Below, piece after piece: positions 3,037 through 55,807 of a DNA stretch of 64,000 nucleotides. Each line of letters starts with the position of its first letter. The stretch's first letter is position 1. This DNA is from Trichosphaerium sp. ATCC 40318. Taxonomy: Eukaryota; Protista; Tubulinea. The stretch is from the NCBI GenBank assembly GCA_038496445.1, contig JALMLS010000282.1:62001-126000 (forward strand), read 5' to 3'. The translations under genes were made by a program, and so were the position numbers. The notes under the pieces are model-generated. The model had not been told where the DNA came from and did no database searches. It was given only the letters and a program-made list of their open reading frames with translations.

Positions 3037-3725
3037 CATTTGTTTGAGCATGTAAACAAGACGCTTAGAGGAAGTTTCACTATCAACTATATTTAGATTC
3101 GCGCATAAGTTGCGACCAACTTAGTGGATACCAAAGTGAATGCATAAAAAACAATCACTTTTTCTGATTGTTTGCAGCAGCAATTTACGTAAATGGTACA
3201 CACAGAGAATTCAAAGATCATTTTAAACGGCGTTGATGAGCTGTAAGAAATATAAAACTGGTAACGCTTGTTCGTGGTGTGGGAAACGATTAAAAACTGT
3301 CTTCCCTTTTCATATTCTATTTTTTATTTCTCGTTTTAACAAGAGAATATTGTAGCATTTGTCCTCCACAAACAATAGGCATAGCTCTATCTACGACTCA
3401 CAAGCCAAAAAAAGAGCTTTTAAAACCAAACAGATAGGTTCATCACCATGATACTTCAAGAGATAGTAGGTTTGTGCAACTTTGGTGCTTTTATAAAAAG
3501 AACTTCTGTTGTGGCTTGGTTGTTTAAGGGCTAATTATGTTACGCGTTTATACAACCTGCGAGATACAACTTGATGTTAAAGCTGAGTTCTTAAGACGGT
3601 ATGAAAAGCAAGTTATCATAGAGTCACGTTTTGTATCACGTGGTTTTTCGCGAGTTTTCACAAAGATTTTTGTGTGATTTTTTGTTTATAATCGATACCA
3701 ACAACATTATTCCGCAACACTCACC

Positions 3726-4735
3726 ATGGTTAAAACGCTTCTCGTTTTTACGTTGCTCACAATATTCCTTATCGAAAGCACTAGCGCCATATCTGCTTCA
3801 AGACCAGATGGACCACCGGAGTGTATAAACAAGAACATTAACAATGTCTTGGTACGTTATTAACAATAAGAAGCTCAAAACTGTAAAACGGGTAAATTGT
3901 TTACTTATTTAATCGTCACTTCTGATGTTCTCTATCCAAATTGCCTGTTCCATTTTTCTTTAAGCTCCAAGCGTTACTTTAGTGATCTCTTCGATCACGT
4001 GATTTTACTTTGGAAAACTTTTTACTACTTTTGTTGCGCTAGTACTCGGATTTTTGTAACTCATGTCGTACCTAGCGCCGAACACTAATTGAGGCTGGTG
4101 TAGTTGCATTACCTCCTTTCTACAATGGAGCATTGGGCCCTACCGTACCAGATGGCCATATCCTCGGACAGCGTCTATTCAGACTGTTGCTTGAGAACCA
4201 ACATCCTTGCTTGACTCAAATGGTTTGGTTAAACAATGCCGAAGTACGCCAAGTGCTAACTGAAGCATCTCGTTTTCCTACAAACCAACAACGTCTTAAC
4301 GTTGGTAACGCTCGACAAGCAATAATCCTTACTGGCTCAAACCAAAACGGTCGATGGGACTTTCAACCGAATGGAAGAACCGTAGATGATATTGCAAGAA
4401 GTCTTCCTGTCGGCAACCATTTAATCCTCTCTCGATTCTTGTTGTTCTCTAGATCTCATCCAATGAACCTGGGTGGCCTTGACTTACACGCACATACTCG
4501 AGGTACTATCCGAAAGTACGCAGACGGCAGTTTCATGTATACCACGTGGGTTACTGTTCATGATTGGTTCAATGTTGAGGCAAGAACTGATCGTGCTGCG
4601 CTTGTTGAGACTATTGTTCGAAGACTTGATGATGCTCCTGGAAATCCTTATGAGATACAAAGTGTTAGAATCTGTGTTTCCTATGTACAAGGTCAATTTG
4701 CGCTATTCTTCCGTCCTAGTAGCTGGTGTAATTGA
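3726..4735 (+). CDS. Secreted protein with a colicin M-like (lipid II-degrading) C-terminal domain
   Basis: Exon 3726-3851 encodes the signal peptide MVKTLLVFTLLTIFLIESTSA. A putative 13-nt microexon (4043-4055) restores phase to the final exon 4104-4735. The segment LGGLDL..TRGT....ADGSFMY...V...DWFNVEARTDR....E...R......GNPYEI matches the ColM catalytic domain by eye. Confidence 0.65.
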
Positions 4736-5164
4736 TAATAAATCACCCTTCGTTAATACTTCGCACGTCATTAATATTAAAAAAATGCTATTTTGAAGCC
4801 TATTCTTTGTACAACCAATCCAGCACGTGATACAAAACAAAGTTTCTCACTCAGTCTTTGTTTGTACGCGCGTACTACTTGTTTATTCGCAAATCTGTGT
4901 CGTATATGGTTCCGCCGCACTCCGACAGTGAGTGTTAATACGCTTCTGGCGTAGTGGGATATAATATGCGACATCACTGTTACATCAGAGCTTCCCATCC
5001 ACTACGGCGCTAAATATTGCATAAATAAATTAGATGTGGTATTTCAGCTGCCAGCGTGTATGCGGTGATAATACGACACCGTTCATGTTTTGTAAAAAAA
5101 GTCACGTGCTGAAAAAAAAAGACTTTGCTTAATCTATTTTTAAACAATACAAGTTACGCTTTGA

Positions 5165-6902
5165 ATGGCAGAAACTCAAACAATAGAGGTTAATTTACAA
5201 TATGTCAACCGTCTGGCCGCAGGTTACAAGCATTCAATGGTAATAGCAGATAATGGCTTTGTTTACACGTGGGGTAATAACTCTTGGTGCCAGCTAGGCA
5301 CCAACACTTTTTTTCAGTATGTACACGAACTAATAAACAAGGCGAGAGCTATCGCTTGTCCAGTCAAGTCACTTGTAAATATTGTATGCATTGCTGCTGG
5401 GTTCAATCATAGCCTTGGTTCAAATGGTATTGTTTATTCATGGGGCTTTAATTCAAACGGTGAATGTGGCCTAGGTCACTTCAAGTCACCTGTTCCCAAA
5501 CCAAGACGTGTTCAACATCTCAACAAAATCACACAAGTCACTGCGTATGATGTGAGTATAGTGCTATCCCAATCAGGTCATGTCTATTCTTGGGGAAACA
5601 ACCGACATCATGGATTGGGACATTCATTCAACAAGACGAAACTAAACTCACCAAAACGTATCCCAAGTCTAGATCATGTTAAGAAAATTCAAACAAGTGG
5701 GCTTGTGGTGCTACGACATCAACAGGTCATGTCTTTCTTTGGGGAACAACAGAAGATGAAGAAGCAGATAAATCGCTATTTTTGAAACCAAAGACAATTT
5801 CACGTGTTCCAAGTATTGATGATGCCACTGATATTGCCATTGGTGATAAACACGTGCTTGTGCTCATCAAGTCAGGACAAGTATTTTCTTTTGGATGCAA
5901 CTTGTTTGACCAGCTTGGGTTGGGAATTGATGACAAGTATGGCCAGGGTATCATCAATGAACTCAGTAACATTGCATCTGTCCATGCTGGCGAGAGGACA
6001 TCGTTTGCATTAAATAGCGAAGGTTGTTTGTTTGGTTGGGGTGAAGGGACATGGATTGATTCGTTCTCGTCAAACATACCCCTAAAATTACCTGGAAAAT
6101 ACCTTGAGTTTGCCAATAAACGATATCATTACTTGGCAATATCTCATGACTTTCAGTTGGTTACAGGTGGTCATAACAATTATGGAGAATCAAATCCGCA
6201 AATTTTGACATTCAACGATCACAAAAAGGTACTGCAACAAAGTTATTCTTCCAAACTTTACGACAATTAGCGTATCAAATATGGCTCTGCACATCCTCTA
6301 CCAATAAAAGAAATGAGGTTAAAGGTGCCGCAAAACAAACCAAACATAAAAGTTCTTGAATAACAAATTTCAAGCAAATCACAACATCCAAAAGCAGCGA
6401 AGCTCTGAAGGAAGACCGAATGGATAAGTACATTTCAAAAGCTACAAGTGAACCCACTCGTGAGTACACCAAGTTTGGAGATGCTCCTGAACACCTTGAT
6501 ATGCTTCAAGATGCCCTTGAAGCCTTTGAAATACAAGAAGACGGTTTTACTGTAAGTATTTACAAATACCAACGTGTTTGGGACAACTGATCTTTGTTCT
6601 AGTATGACCAATCAGATGAACTTAAGCCACAACCTGAAATAGACAATAACAGTATTAATAAGGTATGTATCTCTTTTACTTGTAGTTGTATTTATTAATG
6701 GCTTTAGTCTCATGAAACTGATTGGAAGTCAATATTGGAGAGGTTGGGTATTGCAACAGAAAGAGCTCAAAAACTAGGATTGTTGATGAATGACTCTGGT
6801 ATCAAACATGAGGATATAACTTCAAAGTTGCTAGAAGAGCTTGGATTCAGCCCAATTGAACGTGTAAAAGTATTCAAAGCAAAGCACAACAATATCATTT
6901 AA
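5165..6902 (+). pseudogene. RCC1-repeat protein with SAM-like tail, frameshifted copy
   Basis: RCC1 motifs (GYKHS, VYTWG, GECGLG). A small deletion near 5700-5710 relative to the paralogs splits the ORF into 5165-5785 and 5782-6270. The last exon (DWKSILERLGI...LEELGF) ends at 6902. Confidence 0.75.
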
Positions 6903-18667: not shown

Positions 18668-19682
18668 TATGACAACAAAGCATAGTACAAACAATGCAAA
18701 GGGGTTTAGTAATAAATCTGACGGTTGCCACCTGTTACGCCTTCCCGTTGAGATTCAACTTGATATTATTGATTTAGAGGTATCATTGTATTTAATTTGG
18801 CCTCTTCTATCTAAAACAAGCGCAATGATGACAAGATTCGATGAAGAGATGAAGAAACATGGAAAATGGCAAAGAAGAACATCTAACAACCAACTTGTAA
18901 GCTCTCAGTCGTATTCACAGTAATCAAGTTTCTTCAATTCTATTTTGAACGTGGACCACTTTTTAATTTTATCTTAGACTCATGAACAACATTGGTCACA
19001 TGGTAATATGCATGGAGAACAAAAAGAGTGGCACGATAATGGAAGTTTGTTTGAGACGTGTAACTATACTAATAGTAAACTTGAGGGAGAGTACAAGCGG
19101 TGGCACTTTAATGGTCAATTGTGGTTACATCTTGTTTATGTCAATGATAAATTTGAAGGAGAGTACAAGGAGTGGCATGACAATGGCCAATTGAAACAGC
19201 GTTGCAGTTATGCAAATGGTAAACGAGAAGGAGCATACAGGAGTTGGTATGACAGTGGCCAATTGAAAGAGTATTGTTGTTATGTCTTTGGCAATATTGA
19301 AGGAGAATACAAACAATGGCATGATATTGGTCACTTCAAAGAGCGATGTACTTACGTAAAAGGTAATCCAATTGGAGAATACAAGCAATGGTATGAAGAC
19401 GGCCAATTATGTAAGTGGATTAGATATATCAATGGCAGTCATGCTGAGTGTAATCTTGAAGCAGAGTATAAGATTTGGCATGACAATGGCCAAATGGCAG
19501 AGCACTTTTCTTATGTAAATGGTAAACGAGAAGGAGATTACAAGAAGTGGGGCTATACTGGCAAATTGTTATCACACTTCAATTTTGTCAATGGTACAGC
19601 TGAAGGACGGTGGGATACTGGTGGTCAATATCACGTATTTGAGACACCTGAGATAGAGCCCAATAGGTGTTTGTTGATGTAA
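18668..19682 (+). CDS. F-box-like + MORN-repeat (YwqK-like) protein with C-terminal CaaX (CLLM)
   Basis: Exon 1 (LLRLPVEIQLDIIDL...), phase-0 intron 18897-18977, then repeats of EGEYKxWxxNGQL ending NRCLLM*. Confidence 0.85.
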
Positions 19683-24071: not shown

Positions 24072-25288
24072 GCGTAAGTAACCATGTCTGACGCTAAATA
24101 GAAGAAAAACAACAAGTAGCACCTAAAACGGCGACAAGTGAAAAAATCTTCCCAATATGTAATCTCTACGCATAGAAACTATGTTTAAAGAACTTAGACA
24201 TAGTTCTGTTACTGTTAAAGAAGGGACAAACAACAAATGGAAAAAAAAAACAGAAATCGACAAGAAACGTAAGGGTTATGTCTATCACTTGTAACATACT
24301 ACAATACATTCCTTTTTAAAAAGTACCGAAAAACGTCACAGCTGTTCAAAAAAGGCCAATTTCTGGTTTTGAAAACGCGTATTTTCGAGATTTATAACAA
24401 CGTACGCATTACTCTCAATATACCGCTTTCCTTACCACTTTGTAGATTGCTTATGAGAAAGATTTGTCTTTTTTTTTTCGAAACTACTGCGTAGTCAATA
24501 GTGAAAAATAGGGAAAACAGTATATTCTGTCTTAAAACCTTCACTGGTATACATTCCTACGCGAATTCTTGATAACCAATTTCGGCCAAGACCTTGAAAA
24601 TGCAGGAAGACCCTTGCACATGGAAGTACTATAGTGTGTTATCCCTATGCTGTGACTCTGAAAGTCACATACGCGTACTGATCATGTATTCAGTGATGTT
24701 CGTTGACAAGGCTTTGTCGTTTGTTTTAGTGTTGTCTAAAGGTCAAAAGATCCATTGACATAGTAGAGAATGTTGTGCAAATATAATAATGTCGCATTTG
24801 ACGCGTAGCGTAATTATACTTACACAACATTCTCTTATACTGAAGAATGCAACGCGTAGACATTAAAGTCTTACGTGCTACCTACTTTTAGCAGTCATTG
24901 TTACCCTTTTCGACAATGCATAAGACTTTTCTATGAGGTGCTGCGTACGTATCACTGAAGAGTTTTGAATAATTTATTCAAATTTTCGTATCATGTTCTG
25001 TGAAGCCTCCCAATGAAGTATTTTAGGCAAAGGTACTACCATATTGCAGACATTTGATTAATGACGTTGTACCCGTACAAGTTTAAAGCGTTACTCATCC
25101 TACGCTGCAACTTTGAATTCACTACAAATGGACTGGTGTTTATGCTCTTGAGAGTGGTGTTTTGTTGTATTGTGAGCGTATGTGCTTGTCCACTTGAAGA
25201 TTGTATTAATTTATATTGCTCGTTTTTGTCGTTGACGGTCAAACAGCTTTCTCGTGAAATCTCGATAATACTCGCAAAACCTCACGCA

Positions 25289-28200
25289 ATGCAACCACAA
25301 GGATACGGTCCACCTGGAGGTTACCCTCCACAACCTGGTTACGGCCAACCACCAGTAAACCAACAAAATCAACAACCTCCTCTACCACCATACCAAGGAG
25401 ATGCTCCTCAACGCTTTGGTAGCTTTCCTGGACCTGCGCCGGGTGAAAACGGTCCACCGCCACCAGGCCAACCTACACAGGGCTATCCACCACAAGGACA
25501 ACCAGCGTACGGTCAACCGCCACCAGGACAACAACAACAAGGTTACCCACCGCAAGGGCAACCAGCCCCTCCACAAGGCAGACCAATGGCGGGCGGACCA
25601 CCACAGGGAGCTTTTAGAGGAGAACTAACAGCAAAGTTAAATAACATGTCGCTATCAAACCAACAAGGTCCACCAGTAGGGAAGCCAAAACCTGGTGTTG
25701 GCTTTAAACGTGGCGGTAATGTTACCCGACAACAAGGTTCTGGCGGTGCAGTACACTCTTTCAGCGAGTCCGAACGACGTGCTTTCGTTGAGCACATCAA
25801 TTCGGTTTTAGAGGGCAAAAAGGGCGCAATTAACATAGACCCGAACTCAGACGCTGTTTTTGAAACGATGAAGGACGGTGTACTCCTTTGGTACGTTAAT
25901 CAACCAATTTTTTTTTCGTTTCTACAAATAACTGGTTGCTTCCAACCGAATTTCTTCCAAAAAATGATTTACTAGCAAACTACATACTTTATACGTTCTA
26001 TTTTAATGTGTATTGTGTTTTTTTTTTTTTGCGTTAAAAACGCTTTGTTTTGCGTTAAACAATTACTTACGTGCTTTATTAGTAATCTATTGAACGCTTT
26101 AAGACCTTCTACAATAAAAGAATCAAGTATTAATCAAAAACCGAAAAGCAAGTTTCAAGCTTTGGAGAATATAAGTATGGCACTCAATGCTTGTAAGGAT
26201 TTGGGTATGAGATTAGTTAATATTGGTGCTGTGGATATTCATGAGGGCACTGTACGTGGAGACCCAAGATACCCGAAATTTTTTTTTTTTTCCTATATTT
26301 CAGCGCTCATACGCAATTACATCCAACAAGCATTCGCCTTGTATTTTTTTTACATCTTTGGGTAATGTTAGAGTGGAGAAAAGACGCTTTTTTTTTATAT
26401 TTTTCTTGGGTGTTTTTTAAGTTTTGTCGAGTTTGCTTGGCTTCTATGGAGCCTTTTTTGTGTAGTTTTATTTTTCGTGTTGCGTGCTTATAGATTTTTA
26501 TAGAAACATCTTGTTTTGGGTCTATTGTGGCAGATTATTAAGGTACCATCTTCGTTTTTTATTTTTTTAGTTTGGTGAAAAACACAGTCGACGCACTGTT
26601 GTATGGCGCGTGTATTGACCTATATGTAGTGGGGATTATTAAATGGACTCAATGTTGGTGATCATCCAGAACTTGTAGCTCTTATGCAAAATGATGAGGA
26701 CTTGAACCAATTTCTTAACTTGACACCAGAGGTAAAAATGAGCGAAAAAGAGCTGCTATAGTTTTTTTATTGTTTTGTAAATTACGTACTAATCTGATTA
26801 ATAATTAGGCGTCACTATTGAGATGGTTCAATTATCATTTAAAGCGTGCTGGACATCCTAGACAAGTTAAAAACTTTACAGGCGATATTAAAGACGCTGA
26901 GAATTATTTGGTTCTTCTTGAACAAATAGCACCTCAAATTGTACCAAAAGGTTGTCACAACGAACCAGATGAGAATAATCGTGCTGCTTGGGTATTGCAC
27001 TATGCCGATCAACTGGGTTGTAAAAAGTTTTTGCATGATCCATCAGACATTCTAAAGGTATGTAACATTCGTGCCTGTACGAAAAGCTAATTGTTTTTGA
27101 AGCCAAATCCAAAGTTGAATTTGGCTTTCACAGCGAACTTGTTCAACAAACATCCTGGCCTACAAGCAGATAACTTTGACCAAGAACAACAAAAAGCAGT
27201 CGATGAAGCTAGAAAAAGAGCAGAGGCAAAATTTGCAGAAGAAGAAAGGTACAGCAAATTATATGAGCTAACTAGCTGTTTTTGCTTCTTTGCAGATTTT
27301 TTGCGTGAATTTCCACTTCTTCAACATGTATTGCTTCCGTAGCTCAGTTGGTTAGAGCGCACGACTGTTAATCGTGAGGTCGTAGGTTCGACCCCTACCG
27401 GGAGCGCTTAAATCTTTTCATTTTTTTTGACCTTTTCGGTTGTACTAAGATGCCACAGACTACGAAACGAACGATGGAAGAGAGAAGAAGAACAACAAAA
27501 GCGTCGTTTAGCGGAAATGGAGAATAACATGTAAGCACGACATTGTCTTTTTTTTTTCTCTGATTTCTCGTTAGGAAAAATAGCCTTGCTGCACGCGAAG
27601 CAGAGCATAATGCTCGTATGCAACAAGAAGCTCAGAGAAAAGCTGAAGAAGAAGCGTACCGTAATCAACAAATGCAACTCGCAGACCAAAATCGTGCTGC
27701 TCAGATGACTGCTGCTGATCAAGCACGCAGAGCACAAATTGACGCTGAAGAAAGGGTACATAACGTGGTTACTATTGAGTTGGTTTTAATGCATTGTTAG
27801 GCCATACAACAACGTAGATGGGAAGAAGAGCAAGCGCATAGGCGACGAATGGAAGAAGAAGGCAGAAGACATCAACAACAGATGCAGCAACAACAGCACA
27901 TGCAGACAATGCAGCAACAACAAGTATGATTCTTTTAATCTTTTAGTTACTTTCGTACCGTCTGTTTTTACTAACTACCTTTAACAGTGGCAGAGACAGC
28001 AACAGCAACAACAACAACAACGTGTTACAACTGTGCGTAGTTAAACATCTTCTACGCGACGACTACAAATCCTTATTTTAATACTAGACAACTACTACTC
28101 AGTTCAGACCACCTCCACCACGAACTACTACTGTTGTACATCAAAGAATATTCGCTATTGCTTGTTGGAGTTGTAAACGTCAATTTCAAGCCCAACCTGG

Positions 28201-31452: not shown

Positions 31453-32664
31453 TTACAAATCAGGTTTTGAATCATCCTCTGTGAACTCGTCTTCAACATC
31501 ATTTTCTTCATCAAGTCTTTCTGTATGCAGACAAGGCAATCCACCACTATCTACTTTCATTTTTATCACGTGAGAATATAAATTTCCTCCTTCACTACCT
31601 GTGAAACAATCGGAGATGTAATCTGGGTACTCATACGTAATCTCCATACCAGTAATGTACTGGCAATTTTCACACGTTTTTTTCAATTTCTCAGGTAAAG
31701 ATGACTCCATAAAGTACTTGCTATAATTTCCATAGTTTTCCAATGTTTTAGGGTTCAATGGATTACCATCAATAGCATCATCAATATGTTGAACGATAAT
31801 GTCAGCATGTGTTCCTTCGTATGTTATACCAGAACCATCTGTCATATCTTTGATTCCCGATTTCATCGCATGCGCTACACCCTTTCGAAGCATTTCAAGG
31901 CTTTCAAAAACGCCTATGGACCATACCTCAGTACCATTGCCTCTCCAAGTATCTGTTGTAGCAGTCAACCATATATTTGGATGCATAGCATCGAATTTAG
32001 GGTCGATAGAACCTTCCAATACATCAGTAACCCTATCGCTCATATCGTCATAATTTTGTTTTCCTTTGCCGTAACGCAGTCTTAAATCACGTGGGAAAAT
32101 AGGTGGTGGCACGTGTTCTTTACCTTGTTGCCCTGGAGGTACGTGATCATCAGGCCGTTCAGGTAGTTCACCAAGGCCATCGTGACCACTGAACCCGTAA
32201 TGACCGGTCATCATTACGTTCAAAGGAAGAGGAAGCATACTAAAACCAAAACTGTCTTCCCCGAAATAAAATATTGAAGATTGAGTTTTTACGGCGTCGT
32301 TCTCTTCTGCAGACAATGATGTATCTGTGCGTCTGTGTATCCATCTTAGCGCTTTTTTAGCTTGGTTTGCGTCTTGAGAGAGCTGAACTGGCTCAAACCG
32401 GCATGGATCGCAGAAGCCGTCGCATGCAGAGAATAATACGGCGATATAGAGCTCTTTTGGGATATTTTGGCGGTTAGAAGAGCGGTATTGGTTCCACAGC
32501 GTGTTGCCGTATGAATGCCATAGTTTACAGACCATTGGAATGTTGTGGAGGGAATATCGGTCTAAACAAACGAATACTTCAAGCCAACAGTCTGCAGTTA
32601 ATGATTCCGGACCATATGAGGTATTTTGCATTATTTCTAGGCGTTGCTTTGTATTGTTAGACAT
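31453..32664 (-). CDS. Intronless F-box protein, 403 aa
   Basis: Uninterrupted ORF with F-box LTADCWLEVFVCLDRYSLHNIPMVCKLW and an acidic C-terminus. Confidence 0.75.
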   Translation of the reverse strand: MSNNTKQRLEIMQNTSYGPESLTADCWLEVFVCLDRYSLHNIPMVCKLWHSYGNTLWNQYRSSNRQNIPKELYIAVLFSACDGFCDPCRFEPVQLSQDANQAKKALRWIHRRTDTSLSAEENDAVKTQSSIFYFGEDSFGFSMLPLPLNVMMTGHYGFSGHDGLGELPERPDDHVPPGQQGKEHVPPPIFPRDLRLRYGKGKQNYDDMSDRVTDVLEGSIDPKFDAMHPNIWLTATTDTWRGNGTEVWSIGVFESLEMLRKGVAHAMKSGIKDMTDGSGITYEGTHADIIVQHIDDAIDGNPLNPKTLENYGNYSKYFMESSLPEKLKKTCENCQYITGMEITYEYPDYISDCFTGSEGGNLYSHVIKMKVDSGGLPCLHTERLDEENDVEDEFTEDDSKPDL

Positions 32665-33644: not shown

Positions 33645-34830
33645 CGCTAGCATCTGGCCTCTAAGACTGTTTAGATCGAAATTAAAAATACACCATCACG
33701 TGCTTTTTTATTGCTCTCATTAATGAAATTGACTAACAGTACGCTCCGTGTATGTTAACAGCAGAATAAGGGACCACAAGAAGAAGGATATAATTTATAT
33801 ACTACAACTTTCGTTTGCTTTTGGTGTTGCGTTTAGTTTAGAGCCTGAACAGAAGAACCTTGAACTTCAAAAAAAAACCAGTCTGTTTTCCTGTTAGTAT
33901 GCACCAATTAAAAAAGTAGGTTTTACTTCCAGAAATGTACAAGGATATTAGGCAAACAAAGAAAACAAAGTTTGCTTAATTTGGAACATTTGTGACCACA
34001 ACGAGTGTGAGTAGAGTGTGGTTTGTTTAGGGTGACTAGGGTAGTCGTGAGAACCGTGCCGTTTCGCGTGAACGCGCACAGGAAGATTAGTAAACCCTCC
34101 AAACACCACTCAACATAAAACAACCATCTTCACCATTAACAAGATCGATTTTTATTCAACAAAAAATAAGTAGTAACTGTGAGTTAGAAACTGAAGCTAG
34201 CTCAAATATCTAACTTTCGTAGATTGCCTGGTTTAGAGTTTAAGCTCGTCACCAACTCAGCTCAATAGTGTACCTGATATCCGGATTTGAGCTTCTTTCA
34301 ATCCTTGACACTGAGTATGGTGGAAATGTTATTTTGTTTTAATGTCACTGAGTATACACATGCCGTAAGTACATGAAGTTCATACGGTTCATGCCACACT
34401 AGCAGCTTCCAACATTCTTCAAGCCCAAGAAACTATCTCAACGTTTGATTCCATTTCAGAAAAGAGCCTTCATTTTCAATGTAATAATAGCATATGCGGT
34501 TTGCTGATCGTAGAATTGTTTGATACAAACTGTTTGTATTATACACGTGATTTTTGTAAAACCAAATACAACGTACCTGTTTTATTTCCTTCAGCTCTTG
34601 ATGCTTTCTTTGGTTTATGTAGCGTGTACATGTACATACCCACCTAATTAAATACTATGGTCACTTGCTTGAGTTTCATTGCCGACATTGAAATGTGCAA
34701 AAAATTCGTCTGGTCAAACACAAAACGTGAATAAAATTAACTACCTAAACACACGAACCCATGGCAGAACCTCAGACTTTAGACATTAATTTACAATATG
34801 TTAACCGCTTGGCCACTGGTTTCCAACATT
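33645..34830. repeat. Segmental duplication, inverted copy at about 49680-51405
   Basis: Colinear reverse-complement matches: 33732-33783 vs 51238-51288, 34060-34088 vs 50766-50795, 34150-34475 vs 50365-50680, 34560-34830 vs 49680-49908. Confidence 0.9.
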
Positions 34831-36129
34831 CAATGGTAATCGCAGACGATGGCTTTGTTTACACGTGGGGAGTACACGATGAGCGCCAATTGGGTAACAC
34901 AGGCGTAAAAATGAGTTCCATCGCAAGACCAATAAAGTCACTTGTAAATATCGTCTGTATTGCTGCCGGATACAAGCATAGCGTTGCAGTTGATTTAAAC
35001 GGTATTGTGTATTCATGGGGCTTTAATGAATACGGTGAATTGGGTCTGGGTAACTTTGCGTCACCTGTTTCGTCACCAACACGTGTTCCAGATCTCCCAA
35101 AAATCGCCCAAGTCGCTGCTTATAATGTGAGTATGGCGTTATCACATTCAGGCCATGTCTACTCTTGGGGAGACAACCAATATCACGGATTGGGCCATTC
35201 ATTCGACAAGAAGAAAGTTTCATCACCAGTGGTTATTCCAAATCTTGAAAATGTTCAAAAAATTCAAACTAATCGCTTTGTAAGTGGAGCAATGACATCA
35301 ACAGGTCATGTCTTTCTTTGGGGAACAACAGGTGACAAAACAAATGATACAGCATTATTCTTGAATCCAAAAACAATTTCACGTGTTCCAAACATTGAAG
35401 ATGCCACTGATATTGCCATTGGTGTTTGGCATGTACTTGTTCTCCTCAAGTCAGGACAAGTATTTTCGTTTGGATACAACAACTGTGGGTATCTTGGGTT
35501 GGGTATTGATGACGAGTATGGTCAAAGTATCATCAAAGGACTGAATAACATCGTATCCGTCCATGCTGGTGCTTATTCATCATTTGCAATTGATGATGAA
35601 GGTTGTTTGTTTGGTTGGGGTAAAGGCAAATGGATTGATTCGTTCTATTCATACAAACCATTAAAATTACCTGGAAAAAAATATCATGAGTTTGCCAATA
35701 AAGAATTTCATTACTTGGCAATATCTCATGATTTCAGATTGGTCACAGGTGGTCGAAATGATTATGGAGGATCTTCGCCACAACAATTGACATTCAGTAA
35801 CCACAGTAAGGTACTCAATCATTTATTGTCAATATGATATGCAAACTGTTTGTTTTTAGCCAACATTCACTCAACCACGTGCTAGCGAATCAACCACCCC
35901 TTCAGTTGCTCCAACAACACCAACACCAGTTCAAAACAATGAAACTAATTGGGTGTCAGTATTGACAAGGTTGGGTATCTCAAGTGAGCGAGCACAAGAA
36001 CTTGGATCATTGATGAATGAACTCGACATTCAAGTCAATGAAATTGATCAAGAAGTGTTGAAAGAACTTGGATTCAACTTGGTGGAACGTATCAAGGTCA
36101 CAAAAGCAAAGAGAAATGGCCTTCTTTAG
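34761..36129 (+). CDS. RCC1-repeat beta-propeller protein with a C-terminal SAM-like helical domain (intact, 2 exons)
   Basis: RCC1 ORF to 35810, phase-0 intron to 35859, last exon PTFTQP...NWVSVLTRLGISSERAQELGSLMNELDI...LKELGFNLVERIKV*. Confidence 0.85.
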
Positions 36130-39316: not shown

Positions 39317-40736
39317 AGAGCATAAAGTCAAAGAGAATTAATAAAACCTTAGATAAACATTGACAGAGGTACTCTCAGTCGTAAAGCTTCCAATGCACGT
39401 GTAATCACTCTGTTCACAGGTACTCTTTACTTCGTAAACCTTGTTTGTCTAATTTCACTATTTTCGATAGCTCTATTGTTACTATGTGTTGTCTTTGTAC
39501 TGTAGTGTACGTTGTCCGAAATAAACTGACAGAAAAAGTTAAAAATGCAAACCATGCTCAATACTGCTATCGGTCTATAGAGGTTTACTACGAACTACCT
39601 GAGCTTTGAGAACTGAAATGTGTAAAAGGAGCACTGTAGAGGCATGTATATGTACACATAGTGTGTTGATGCAAACTGTTGTATTGTGTTTTGTCTACAA
39701 TAGTTACCTGGAGTGTACATCAACTTAAGTTGGAATTGACTCACAAGTTTTCAGAGGCAATACAGTTAACAAGTTTGACAACCTCACGATTGCAACGCTA
39801 AACAAAATTCATTGTCTCTTTCTTCGAAAACTTGAGCACAGGTTCCAATCAAAAAAGAAATGAAAATGTTTCTGTAATTGTAGTAGTTGCAGTGTGCACC
39901 ACGCGTGGGGCTTCGTAGCCATTTGGGCGAAAAAATTTAAGGGAGTCCTCCGTCTAGCTTAGTGGGTGTATGCATTGCGAGGTGGAGCTGTCAAAGTTCC
40001 ATCTTAATCCGACGTAGTGTGAAAGCTTGAATCGTTACATTAGCCAGCATGTCCTCGTAAGTAGCACGTAATTAACTTAGGAACTCGGTCTGGGCCAAGA
40101 AAATTATAAGGTCCGATATAGAGGTGAGTTATGCCGTTAGGGAAAAGCTGTATAAAATTTGAATAGGCGCTGTATAGCAGCCTATGATCGTTCTTTTTAC
40201 AACCTTTTGACCTCCTGTGCAAGCAGTTGTTGGGGTGTAACCAATGGGTACGAAAGAAAGTTAGAAGGGTGGTAATATACACTGCTCTATTCATTGGACG
40301 CAGTATGTAAGAAAACGCTAAGCATGTTTCTGTAGCAAAATCAAGATATAATGACCGTGGTTTCGTACTTGTCTTTGTTTATGGAGCAGTTTTTCAGATT
40401 TTGCACAACACGTGCAATGAAAAAAAGTACAGAGATAAGTACAATAGTGAATATGAAGAAAAGGTTTGGAAGACGACCATACCGGGGAGACCATTGACAC
40501 TGTAGTACTAGGTAAGCGTGAATTTGTTAAATTCTCAACTACTAAAACTACAAGCACTGATTGAGCTAACAACAGTTACTAGAGGTATCTCGTGTAGTAA
40601 TTTTATGAGCACTCTAAGAAAAAAGCGTGTAAATTTACGCCTGTTTTGGTAATACACGCGATTATTGAAAACTTAACACAATTTGAACTTGCCTTATATG
40701 AAAAAACAGAAATACGTCATTTCGTACCACACAAAG

Positions 40737-41294
40737 ATGTTAAAGCTTGTACTCCTATCATGCCTATTCCTATCCGTATCATTCTGCGCTGACCCTCCTG
40801 AATGGTTTGAGTACGCCAAGTACGCGAGATACCTCATTTCTGAAGCAACATGGGGTACAGCGTCTTCGATAACACTTGACAATCGCCCAAGAGGAAACGT
40901 CTTTTCTTTCTCAGATGGTGACGCTTCAGGGTCAACGGGGATTCCAGTGTTCCTACTCACTCCAATGGACCCTACTATACCTGAATGGAAAGCCAATAGT
41001 AACTGTAGCTTAAGCGTAACTCTGAAACAAATAGCTGATGGAAAGTACTGTAGTACCATTGATACAGAGAACCCAACATGTGGTAGAATAACATTATTTG
41101 GAAGCTGTCAGCAAGTTAAACCTGCGGACTTGGATAAAGCTAAGTCAGCGTTCTACTACAAGCACCCACACGCAAAAGATTGGCCAAGCTTTCATGACTT
41201 TGAGTTCTGGACAATGAATCTTACGTCTGTATGGATGCTTGATTACTACGGTGGACCGCATGATACGACTGTAAAAGAGTACTTAGAAGCTTAA
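40737..41294 (+). CDS. CREG: CREG-family secreted/lysosomal protein (intronless)
   Basis: Signal peptide, ARYL..EATWG, SFSDG....STGIPVF, ENPTCGRITL.G, KHP.AKDWP..HDF and WMLDYYGG. Confidence 0.9.
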   Translation: MLKLVLLSCLFLSVSFCADPPEWFEYAKYARYLISEATWGTASSITLDNRPRGNVFSFSDGDASGSTGIPVFLLTPMDPTIPEWKANSNCSLSVTLKQIADGKYCSTIDTENPTCGRITLFGSCQQVKPADLDKAKSAFYYKHPHAKDWPSFHDFEFWTMNLTSVWMLDYYGGPHDTTVKEYLEA

Positions 41295-43235: not shown

Positions 43236-44970
43236 CTAAAGATTGCCATTTCTCTTTGCTTTTGTGACCTTGATACGTTCCATCAAGATGAATCCAAGTT
43301 CTTTCAACACTTCTTGATCAATTTCATTGACTTGAATGGCGAGTTCATTCATCAATGATCCAAGTTCTTGTGCTCGCTCACTTGAGATACCCAACCCTTT
43401 CAATACTGACACCCAATCAGTTTCATTGTTTTGAATCGGTATTGGTGTTGTTGGAGCAACTGAAGGGATGGTTGATTTGGTATCACGTGGTTGAGTGAAT
43501 GTTGGCTAAATAACAGTCAAGTTAAAGAAACTTGAAACTGAAATAATACATACCTTGGTGTCAACAGAAACGTTGGGTTCCTCAATCCACGACTTGTTGG
43601 TTACATCATGTGACAATAAAACGGGGTTACTTGGTTCACTACTAGCCTATGAACTTGTTAGGAATGTATTTTGTTATTTTTTGGTACATCATTTAATATG
43701 TCTTTTTGGTTCTGTATTTCAAGAGCATCTTTAATCATATTGACATGCTCTGAGGCGTCTCCAAACTTGGTGTAACTTTTTTGAATGTTTACACCATCAA
43801 ACGACAAGTGTGTGTGGGTCTTGTTTCAACTCTTTGCGTATCTCTTCTAAAGTGTTCTTTTGAGGTTGGATTACCTAAAAACAAGCAGTTTGCATATATT
43901 GACAATAAATGATTGAGTACCTTCCTGTGGTTACTGAATGACAATTGTTGTGGCGAAGATTCTCCATAATCATTATCACCACCTGTAACCAATCTGAAAT
44001 CATGAGATATTGCCAAGTAATGCCATCGTTTATTGGCAAACTCAAGATATTTTCCAGGTAATTTTAATGGTTTGTTTGATTTGAACGAATCAATCCATTT
44101 CCCTCTACCCCAAGCAAACAACCAACCTTCATCATCAATCGCAAATGATGAATGACCACCAGCATGGACAGATATGATGTTATTCAGTCCTTTGATGATA
44201 CCTTGGCCACACTTGCCATTAATACCCAATCCAAGACACCCATAGTAGAGGTTGCATCCAAAAGAAAATACTTGTCCTGACTTGAGGAGAACAAGTACAT
44301 GCCAATAACCAATGGCAATATCAGTGGCATCTTCAATGTTTGGAACACGTGAAATTGTCTGTAGATTCAAGAACAATGCTTTATCTACTGCTTCATCAAG
44401 TGTTGTTCCCCAAAGAAAGACATGACCTGTTGATGTCATTGCTCCACTTACATGAGAATTAGTTTGAATTTTTTGAACATTTTGAAGATTTGGAATAAGC
44501 ACTGGTGATGAAACTTTCTTCTTGTCGAATGAATGACCCAATCCATGACATGAGTTATCTCCCCAAGAGTAGACATGACCTGAATGTGATAACGCCATAC
44601 TCACACTACCGGCAGTGACTTTCGTGATATTATTGAGATTTGAAACACGTGTTGGTGACGAAATAGGTGACTTGAAGTGACCCAGACCCAATTCACCGAA
44701 TGTATTACAGCCCCATGCATACACAATACCATTCGAATCAACTGCAACGCTATGTTGATATCCAGCAGCAATACAGACGATATTTACAAGTGACTTTATT
44801 GGTCTTGCGATAGAACTCTTTTTTTTGCCTGTATTACCCAATTGGCGGTTATCGTTTTGCCCCCATGTGTAAACAAAGCCATCGTCTGCGATTACCATTG
44901 AATGTCCATCACCAATGGCCAAGCGGTTAACATATTGTAAATTAATGTCTAAAGTTTGAGTTTCTGCCAT
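43236..44970 (-). CDS. RCC1-repeat protein with SAM-like tail (4 exons); exon 2 appears frameshifted
   Basis: Complete RCC1 exon. The tail exons match the paralogs, but the frame shifts at a short (CA)n run near 43808-43816. Confidence 0.75.
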
Positions 44971-54398: not shown

Positions 54399-55807
54399 AT
54401 GGCAGCAAAACGCAAGGTACATTAATGAGCGCATTTGCAGTAATATTAGACCATTCATACAGGAGCCTCTGTAGATTAAAAAGCCTTACAAGTTTACTAA
54501 GTTATTTTCGCTACTTACTAAATTACGCGTAGATAAATACCTCAAAATCTGATAACCATCTTTTTGACCTCCCAGTGGAGCTACATCTCGATATTATCGA
54601 TCTAGATGATAAGCTGTTCTCAAAGTGGCCACTACTATCGAAACACACAGCAATGACGACAAGGTTTGATTGTGAGTTTAATAAACATGGTAAATGGAAA
54701 GATTGGCACTACAATGGGCTTATAAGAAGGTTATGTGTCTTTTTAAATGGTAAACAAGATGGAGAATACAAAGAGTGGCATAACAATGGGAAACTACATA
54801 CTCAGCATAATCGTGTTGATGACAAGTACAAAGGAGAGTACAAGTCATGGGATTTGAGAGGCAGATTGACTGAGTTTTGTACTTATGTCAATGGTAAACT
54901 TGAAGGAGAATACACTACTTGGCATGCTGGTGTAATGACAAAGAAGTGTTTTTATGTTGATGGTAAACTTGAGGGGGAATACAAGAATTGGACTAAAGAG
55001 TTTCAACTTCTTGTTCATTGTCATTATGTCAATGGTAAGCAAGAAGGTATGTACCGTGAATATTATGAACAAGGTCAACGAAGAATCAGAGTTAATTATG
55101 TTGATGATAACAAAGAAGGTGAGTATAAGAGATGGTATGAAAATGGAAACCTAGAAGTTAAGATGTACTTTAAAAATGGTAAAGCAGAAGGAGAACAAAC
55201 GTATTATCATCAAACAGGAAAGAAGTATTTCCAACAGTTTTTGGTAAATGAAATACGACAAGGAGAGTACAAGGAATGGCATTTTAATGGTGCTTTGAAA
55301 AAGCAAAGTAATTACAAAAATGGTGAACTTGACGGAGTACACAAGGAGTTTCATAATAACGGTCAGTTATGCTGCCAAGGTTACAATGTAGATGGTAAGC
55401 TAAATGGAGAGTATAAAGAGTGGCATAGGAATGGTCAATTGTATCAACAGTGTTGGTATGAAGATGATAAACTTGAAGGAGAATTAACTCAATGGTATGA
55501 AAATGGTAACATTGAAAAACATTATCATCTTGTCAATGATAAACTAGAAGGTATGATGAAAGTATGGTACTATAACAAGAATATGCATTATCAATGTAAT
55601 TATTTAAATGATGAATATCATGGGGAGTATACTGAGTGGCATGAAAACGGTCAAGTTTACAAAAAGTGTAATTACACTAATGGAAGGATCAATGACGGAG
55701 AGTACAATGAATGGTACAACAATGGTCAATTATCTAGACAATATTTTATTGTTGATAATGAAAGGGTAAACAGTTTGACAGTAGAATGGAGTTATAACGG
55801 AGAATAA
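54399..55807 (+). CDS. F-box-like + long MORN-repeat protein
   Basis: 410-aa ORF with HLFDLPVELHLDII and many MORN repeats. There is no ATG ahead of the F-box. A likely first exon MAAKRK (54399-54416) joins through a phase-0 intron 54417-54532. Confidence 0.8.

Follow-up and report, generated by a model that had tools for sequence, protein, structure and literature searches.

The gene at positions 3726 to 4735 (plus strand) of the window (the whole 64-kb stretch of DNA that was analysed) was a real, spliced, transcribed eukaryotic gene, and the core of its product (the window protein) was supported, at the profile–profile level, as a homologue of the catalytic domain of colicin M (ColM) belonging to a distant sister family. 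A bacterial origin followed by domestication is the most likely history of this gene, and we put at a little better than even the reading that the window protein would be a secreted or phagosomal enzyme attacking bacterial undecaprenyl-diphosphate-linked wall precursors in the manner of ColM.

Gene structure, transcripts, and signal peptide

The gene displayed a two-exon structure with the following features:

3726..3851, plus strand: exon 1, 42 codons (ATG, signal peptide, and first residues of the mature protein, among them Cys33)
3852..4075, plus strand: spliceosomal intron, 224 nt, GT..AG, phase 0
4076..4735, plus strand: exon 2, 219 codons plus TGA stop (4733–4735), remainder of the mature protein
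4400..4660, plus strand: ColM-like domain core, exon-2 residues 109–195 (from hhalign and BLASTP to ColM)
4562..4594, plus strand: equivalent of the ColM motif, D-W-F-N-V-E-A-R-T-D-R, D205 to R215 of the full-length protein
4736..4956, plus strand: 3′ UTR, approximate extent from contigs (X3 to 4905 and X4 to 4956)

Logan contigs of four public runs (X1 to X4), presumed by guess to be RNA, were placed on window positions 3300–5300. One contig each from X2 and X4 (two independent studies) fused 3851 straight to 4076 with the 224 nt absent; these contigs spanned 3736–3850 and 3813–3850 of exon 1, continued at 4075/4076, and joined the signal exon in frame to the long ORF, giving a spliced product of 261 aa. 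Since the stretch missing from these contigs ran exactly from GT to AG in the genomic sequence and was missing in two studies, cDNA was the simplest explanation of the spliced contigs. The exon 2 region (4034–4956) was covered by contigs of X1, X3, and X4. A preliminary description of this DNA had proposed a signal-peptide exon, several introns, and a microexon at 4043–4055: the signal-peptide exon was borne out, with ATG 3726 opening the 42-codon exon that was joined to the ORF in the X2 and X4 contigs, and the translation that it quoted for 4469–4657 was exact; the introns came down to one (3852–4075), and the microexon was missing from the spliced contigs, which passed directly from 3851 to 4076. 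An acceptor at 4103/4104, used in the first gene model of our own analysis, was ruled out by the same junction.

Two further features of the contigs were observed: (i) the X3 contig 4034–4905 was collinear with the genome and still contained the 42 nt at the 3′ end of the intron, a sign that the intron is retained or that transcription starts internally; and (ii) X4 lacked 2 nt at 4867, within the 3′ UTR.

Exon 1, read from ATG 3726, encoded MVKTLLVFTLLTIFLIESTSA followed by ISASRPDGPPECINKNINNVL. By inspection of the sequence, the N-terminus MVK-TLLVFTLLTIFLI-ESTSA had the charged, hydrophobic, and small-residue parts of the classic three-part form; the predicted signal peptide comprised residues 1–21, with likely cleavage after ESTSA, and the protein would enter the secretory pathway via a cleavable signal peptide. 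Cys33 in exon 1 was paired with Cys in three bacterial relatives (P0001, P0003, and P0004; see below), and four Cys were conserved family-wide, as expected of extracytoplasmic proteins. The signal peptide ran directly into a family-specific N-terminal region, with no modular toxin layout.

A rare family with four bacterial relatives

The window protein had no match in Pfam at E up to 10, none in NCBIfam, and none in a word-indexed protein search; the same word-indexed search with a family profile recovered P0003 alone. An exhaustive phmmer search of 1.84 billion representative proteins gave four matches, three of which were true relatives: P0001 (268 aa, phmmer E 3e-14), with a signal-peptide-like leader, and P0003 (326 aa) and P0004 (293 aa), with the lipoboxes LTGC and LAGC. 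A further search with P0001 as the query added P0005, which was 66% identical to P0001. None of P0001, P0003, and P0004 matched a Pfam family at E up to 1. With the family profile, bacterial and archaeal genomes yielded no relative, and a metagenome scan yielded only the contig of P0001; judged by these searches, the five-member family is very rare and previously undescribed.

All four relatives were bacterial exported or lipoprotein-type proteins and were metagenome-derived. Their contigs were bacterial, with dense genes that included those for SDR, phospholipase A1, ECF sigma factor, and histidine kinase, and contig GC spanned 32% to 66%. The window protein was 26–33% identical to its bacterial relatives. 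In BLASTP, the spliced window protein aligned with P0001 over residues 1–244 (28% identity, E 6e-25), and P0004 aligned with it from residue 32 onward; these alignments indicate that the mature part of exon 1 is homologous to bacterial proteins and that the intron lies inside the homologous region.

It had been proposed earlier that an ER signal peptide replaced the uptake domains of a colicin, and this proposal did not hold: the bacterial relatives were already signal-peptide or lipobox proteins with the same full-length layout, so the eukaryote would have inherited an exported protein with no swap of uptake domains. The source would so have been a separate, undescribed sister family with a secreted architecture, not a modular colicin.

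The fourth phmmer match, P0002 (2116 aa, E 3e-11), was rejected as a family member, because it matched only exon-2 residues 68–122, via at least eight internal repeats. P0002 was metagenomic and had CopC-domain matches; the corresponding part of the window (4277–4441) resembled its repeats in the pattern G.W.Y ... G.Y.V.Y.F, and the similarity probably reflects a shared beta-hairpin-type module.

Six tandem paralogous 72-aa genes flanked the P0001 gene (4981–5787) at L002:4246–7136, two upstream and four downstream. The encoded proteins had signal-peptide-like N-termini (MTxKFLLACxTLSLCAAGTAFSAG...) and are candidate immunity or partner peptides.

Homology to the catalytic domain of colicin M

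ColM domains were taken from bacterial genomes by a degenerate motif pattern, and eight catalytic domains, all of which matched PF14859, were aligned (A2). In hhalign, the family alignment of four sequences (A1) matched A2 with Prob 92.8%, E 4e-7, and score 51.8 over 85 columns, and the five-member alignment (A3) did so with Prob 90%; the bacterial members alone reached Prob 80% and E 1.4e-5, and the window protein alone E 0.0025. As controls, 200 column shuffles gave scores of at most 22.4 versus the real 51.8, and reversed alignments gave 12–15. A more permissive hhalign alignment paired the N-terminal family helix ERLFxHYxQN with AxxHYxxGxG of ColM, which implied an insertion of about 50 residues.

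The E. coli ColM reference was the cma gene product of an annotated plasmid (L021). BLASTP aligned exon-2 residues 103–194 with ColM 163–257 (24/95 identities, pairwise E 1e-05). The preliminary description had counted by eye about 20 identities over about 64 positions to the ColM C-terminus; its register was the one recovered, and the count came to about 18 in a 63-residue stretch.

Searches of the PDB put ColM-type bacteriocins alone at the top: pectocin M2 ranked first with the single sequence in phmmer (E 0.33), syringacin M ranked first with the four-sequence family profile (three entries at E 0.03–0.9), and the four best matches with the five-sequence profile were syringacin M, pectocin M1, and pectocin M2. 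The alignment register was identical across these searches. By ESM Atlas features, the first cluster was Colicin M (score 0.95, 212/256 features) and the third was DUF3289 (score 0.94). A small ColM HMM gave the window protein 10.9 bits versus 7.9 for the best of 2000 shuffles; this marginal score points to a relation at the superfamily level, beyond the reach of profile–sequence comparison. In keeping with this, the profile–profile match foreseen in the preliminary description was recovered well above the shuffles, and a match to the Pfam Colicin_M HMM was not, PF14859 not being reached at E up to 10.

AlphaFold2 models were of low confidence both without an alignment (pLDDT 37.7) and with four sequences (pLDDT 49.0, pTM 0.51). 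With these poor models as input, Foldseek against PDB, VIA-align against 48,161 chains plus a second look, and an Atlas shape search returned noise only and no ColM. The C-terminal half was predicted, in a low-confidence model, as a pair of long strands followed by a loop, a helix, and a further strand, an element order that would be in weak agreement with the ColM sequence alignment.

These results also bear on a different explanation, that the window protein belongs to an unrelated small secreted family of unknown function and resembles ColM by chance or convergence. The single-sequence statistics were weak (the phmmer E above, together with the missing Pfam match), the poor models gave no structural match, and the hhalign probability was 90–93% and not 99%, all of which would fit a chance resemblance. 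Several different searches nonetheless converged on ColM in one register, the score lay far over the 200 shuffles and the reversed controls, and the bacterial members reached ColM without the window protein; we therefore consider chance or convergence quite improbable and retain distant homology to ColM as the preferred explanation.

Catalytic motif and putative function

The ColM catalytic motif is DKYDFNASTHR, i.e., DxYD(x5)HR, comprising D226, Y228, D229, H235, and R236; Ala mutants of each of these five residues had <2% activity, loss of D226 and R236 was the most damaging, D226 tolerated no substitution, and its equivalent in syringacin M binds a metal ion (PMC8469651). The earlier reading of the motif in this DNA as DxFN(x5)DR was confirmed: the equivalents of D226 and R236 and the downstream Glu were kept, while D229 was changed to N and H235 to D. 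Counting Y228 to F as well, the window protein differed at three of the five positions essential for ColM activity. The residues at the five positions were as follows:

Window protein: D226, D; Y228, F; D229, N; H235, D; R236, R
P0001: D226, D; Y228, W; D229, D; H235, S; R236, R
P0003: D226, D; Y228, F; D229, G; H235, N; R236, R
P0004: D226, D; Y228, W; D229, G; H235, ?; R236, R

The equivalents of D226 and R236 were conserved in 5/5 family members, an aromatic residue stood at the Tyr position family-wide, and the downstream Glu (equivalent of E241) was present in 4/5; the second Asp (D229) and the His (H235) were not kept family-wide. In addition, the family had its own invariant residues missing in ColM (D136, K147, T160, R182, N190, and S196 of exon 2). 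The ColM-like domain of PmnH also has an altered motif and was reported as apparently inactive (PMC8469651).

In the mechanism that we propose, this 261-aa protein of the secretory pathway is encoded in the nuclear genome of a eukaryote that is probably a bacterivorous protist; the gene would have come from a bacterium, after which it gained an intron, took on the codon usage of its host, and acquired a signal peptide of eukaryotic type. The protein would reach the phagosome or the cell exterior, where it may cut undecaprenyl-diphosphate-linked precursors at their diphosphate link (lipid II or a related carrier-lipid intermediate); bacterial wall synthesis would then stop, helping to kill or digest prey. 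Cleavage of lipid II by the window protein is itself something that we infer from the sequence relationship.

The same residues could be read otherwise, with the window protein as a true ColM-superfamily homologue from bacteria that does not hydrolyse lipid II, perhaps a pseudo-enzyme that can do no more than bind a carrier-lipid-linked glycan, or perhaps an enzyme whose remodelled active site acts on another substrate. Such a reading, which we regard as less likely but as the main rival, would account for the three changed essential residues, for the retention across the family of only D226, R236, and E241 (the Glu in 4/5), for the invariant residues that ColM lacks, and for the lipoprotein-type bacterial relatives, which were without the import or polymorphic-toxin delivery modules of ColM toxins. 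It fits less well with an ORF that was intact and transcribed, and with conservation of the two residues most critical in ColM, of the four Cys, and of a secretory leader, which together suggest a selected extracytoplasmic activity. An enzyme acting on wall precursors is accordingly kept here as the working interpretation, at the strength given at the outset.

Genomic setting and origin

The window harbored, elsewhere, ORFs for RCC1-repeat, MORN_2, and CREG beta-barrel proteins (Pfam). GC was 0.44 in the exons, 0.34 in the intron, and 0.37 (37.1%) as the window mean, and GC3 of the gene was 0.35 versus 0.30–0.42 in four neighbouring genes; the locus is eukaryotic and its codon GC host-like. 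No paralogue was found in the 64-kb window by tblastn.

The accompanying gene content was as follows: (i) three RCC1-repeat genes at 5165–5785, 34761–35837, and 43789–44970 (minus strand), the latter two each being one long ORF (358 and 393 aa); (ii) MORN_2-repeat proteins encoded at 19008–19682 and 54575–55807; (iii) a CREG beta-barrel domain encoded at 40683–41294 (Pfam E 1e-43), probably one exon of a larger gene; and (iv) two long ORFs with no Pfam match at 25061–25975 (304 aa) and 31453–32664 (minus strand, 403 aa).

With ColM domains as the root of the tree, the family formed one clade (100/100), and the window protein grouped with P0001 and P0005 (96/99) to the exclusion of P0003 and P0004; with five family sequences the tree, like the family profile, was thin, and it had long branches, that of the window protein included. 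The phylogeny thus nested the window protein among bacterial relatives. This nested placement, the bacterial range of the ColM superfamily, the wide GC spread of the bacterial members, and the intron within the homologous region argue for a transfer from a bacterium to a eukaryote, followed by intron gain and amelioration. Horizontal acquisition and domestication, as had been suggested from the sequence at the outset, fitted the bacterial nearest relatives, the internal intron, and the nested tree; the part of that suggestion that did not survive was the replacement of uptake domains.

Bacterial contamination or mis-assembly, by which the gene would not be eukaryotic at all, is close to negligible in probability. 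The bacterial nearest relatives and the exon GC slightly over the window mean might be taken to point that way, but a canonical GT..AG intron was removed in contigs of two studies, the gene sits within 64 kb of eukaryotic genes and has a GC3 in line with that of its neighbours, and its identity to the bacterial relatives is no more than 26–33%. Acquisition by transfer is the reading carried forward: a eukaryote probably captured what had been a bacterial weapon.

Comparison with known systems

The closest known systems are the colicin M bacteriocins (PF14859: ColM, PaeM, syringacin M, and pectocins M1/M2) and ColM-domain polymorphic toxins, to which at least 85 C-terminal residues of the window protein were homologous at the profile level. 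The window protein and ColM shared the strand block LG..L..G...G.W.Y, the metal-Asp loop, the Arg, the Glu helix, and the G..Y.I strand, but they displayed clear differences: (i) the motif was DxYD(x5)HR in ColM and DxFN(x5)DR in the window protein; (ii) the window protein had the insertion of about 50 residues and the four conserved Cys; (iii) unlike ColM toxins, it contained no translocation or receptor domains, no RHS/T6SS module, and no adjoining immunity gene (no immunity-like gene was found beside it among the window ORFs; compare cma-cmi on plasmid L021); and (iv) it was encoded in a eukaryote by an intron-bearing gene.

RHS-type polymorphic toxins ending in a ColM catalytic domain were also observed, one of 1911 aa in Kiritimatiellia (L007:1649–7381, minus strand) and others in Stenotrophomonas, Chthoniobacterales, and Candidatus Electrothrix genomes (L012, L017, and L020), which indicates that the ColM domain is widely used outside Proteobacteria. 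To our knowledge, ColM-type toxins are the only protein antibiotics that destroy lipid II enzymatically.

DUF3289 type VI effectors are structural homologues of ColM with DUF943 immunity (2024 paper, PMC11148199). DUF3289 is a branch of the ColM fold that has diverged in sequence and is not connected with Colicin_M in Pfam, as the family described here would also be; the window protein had no match to Pfam DUF3289 (PF11692), and DUF3289 proteins are T6SS-injected and immunity-paired, whereas the family of the window protein is predicted to be exported by signal peptide.

Reviews of the ColM family describe members from bacteria only (PMC8469651, PMC5821083), and a full-text literature search found no eukaryotic ColM member. 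We tentatively propose, at somewhat short of even confidence, that the ColM superfamily would have in the window protein its first eukaryotic member: a carrier-lipid phosphodiesterase of a rare exported-protein branch, captured by a phagotrophic eukaryote, that would have gained an intron and an ER signal peptide, be secreted or phagosomal, and kill or digest bacteria through destruction of their wall precursor. If true, this would point to a route by which amoeboid predators attack the cell walls of their prey. The analysis also brought to light a sister family of ColM so rare that billions of proteins yielded only four bacterial members, and whose conserved residues are different; this family could reveal the truly indispensable parts of the ColM active site, and it represents a putative lipid II-degrading scaffold with no need for the colicin import machinery.

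Bacterial antibacterial toxins have been domesticated in a eukaryote before: the dae genes of ticks are tae-derived and encode an amidase. If the proposal made here is true, the few bacterial weapons known to have been domesticated by eukaryotes would be joined by one of a new toxin class. Like tick dae, the present gene would be a bacterial cell-wall-targeting weapon that moved to a eukaryote and took on a eukaryotic gene structure, with a product that would be secreted; unlike tick dae, it would bring a putative carrier-lipid phosphodiesterase fold and not a peptidoglycan amidase or lysozyme.
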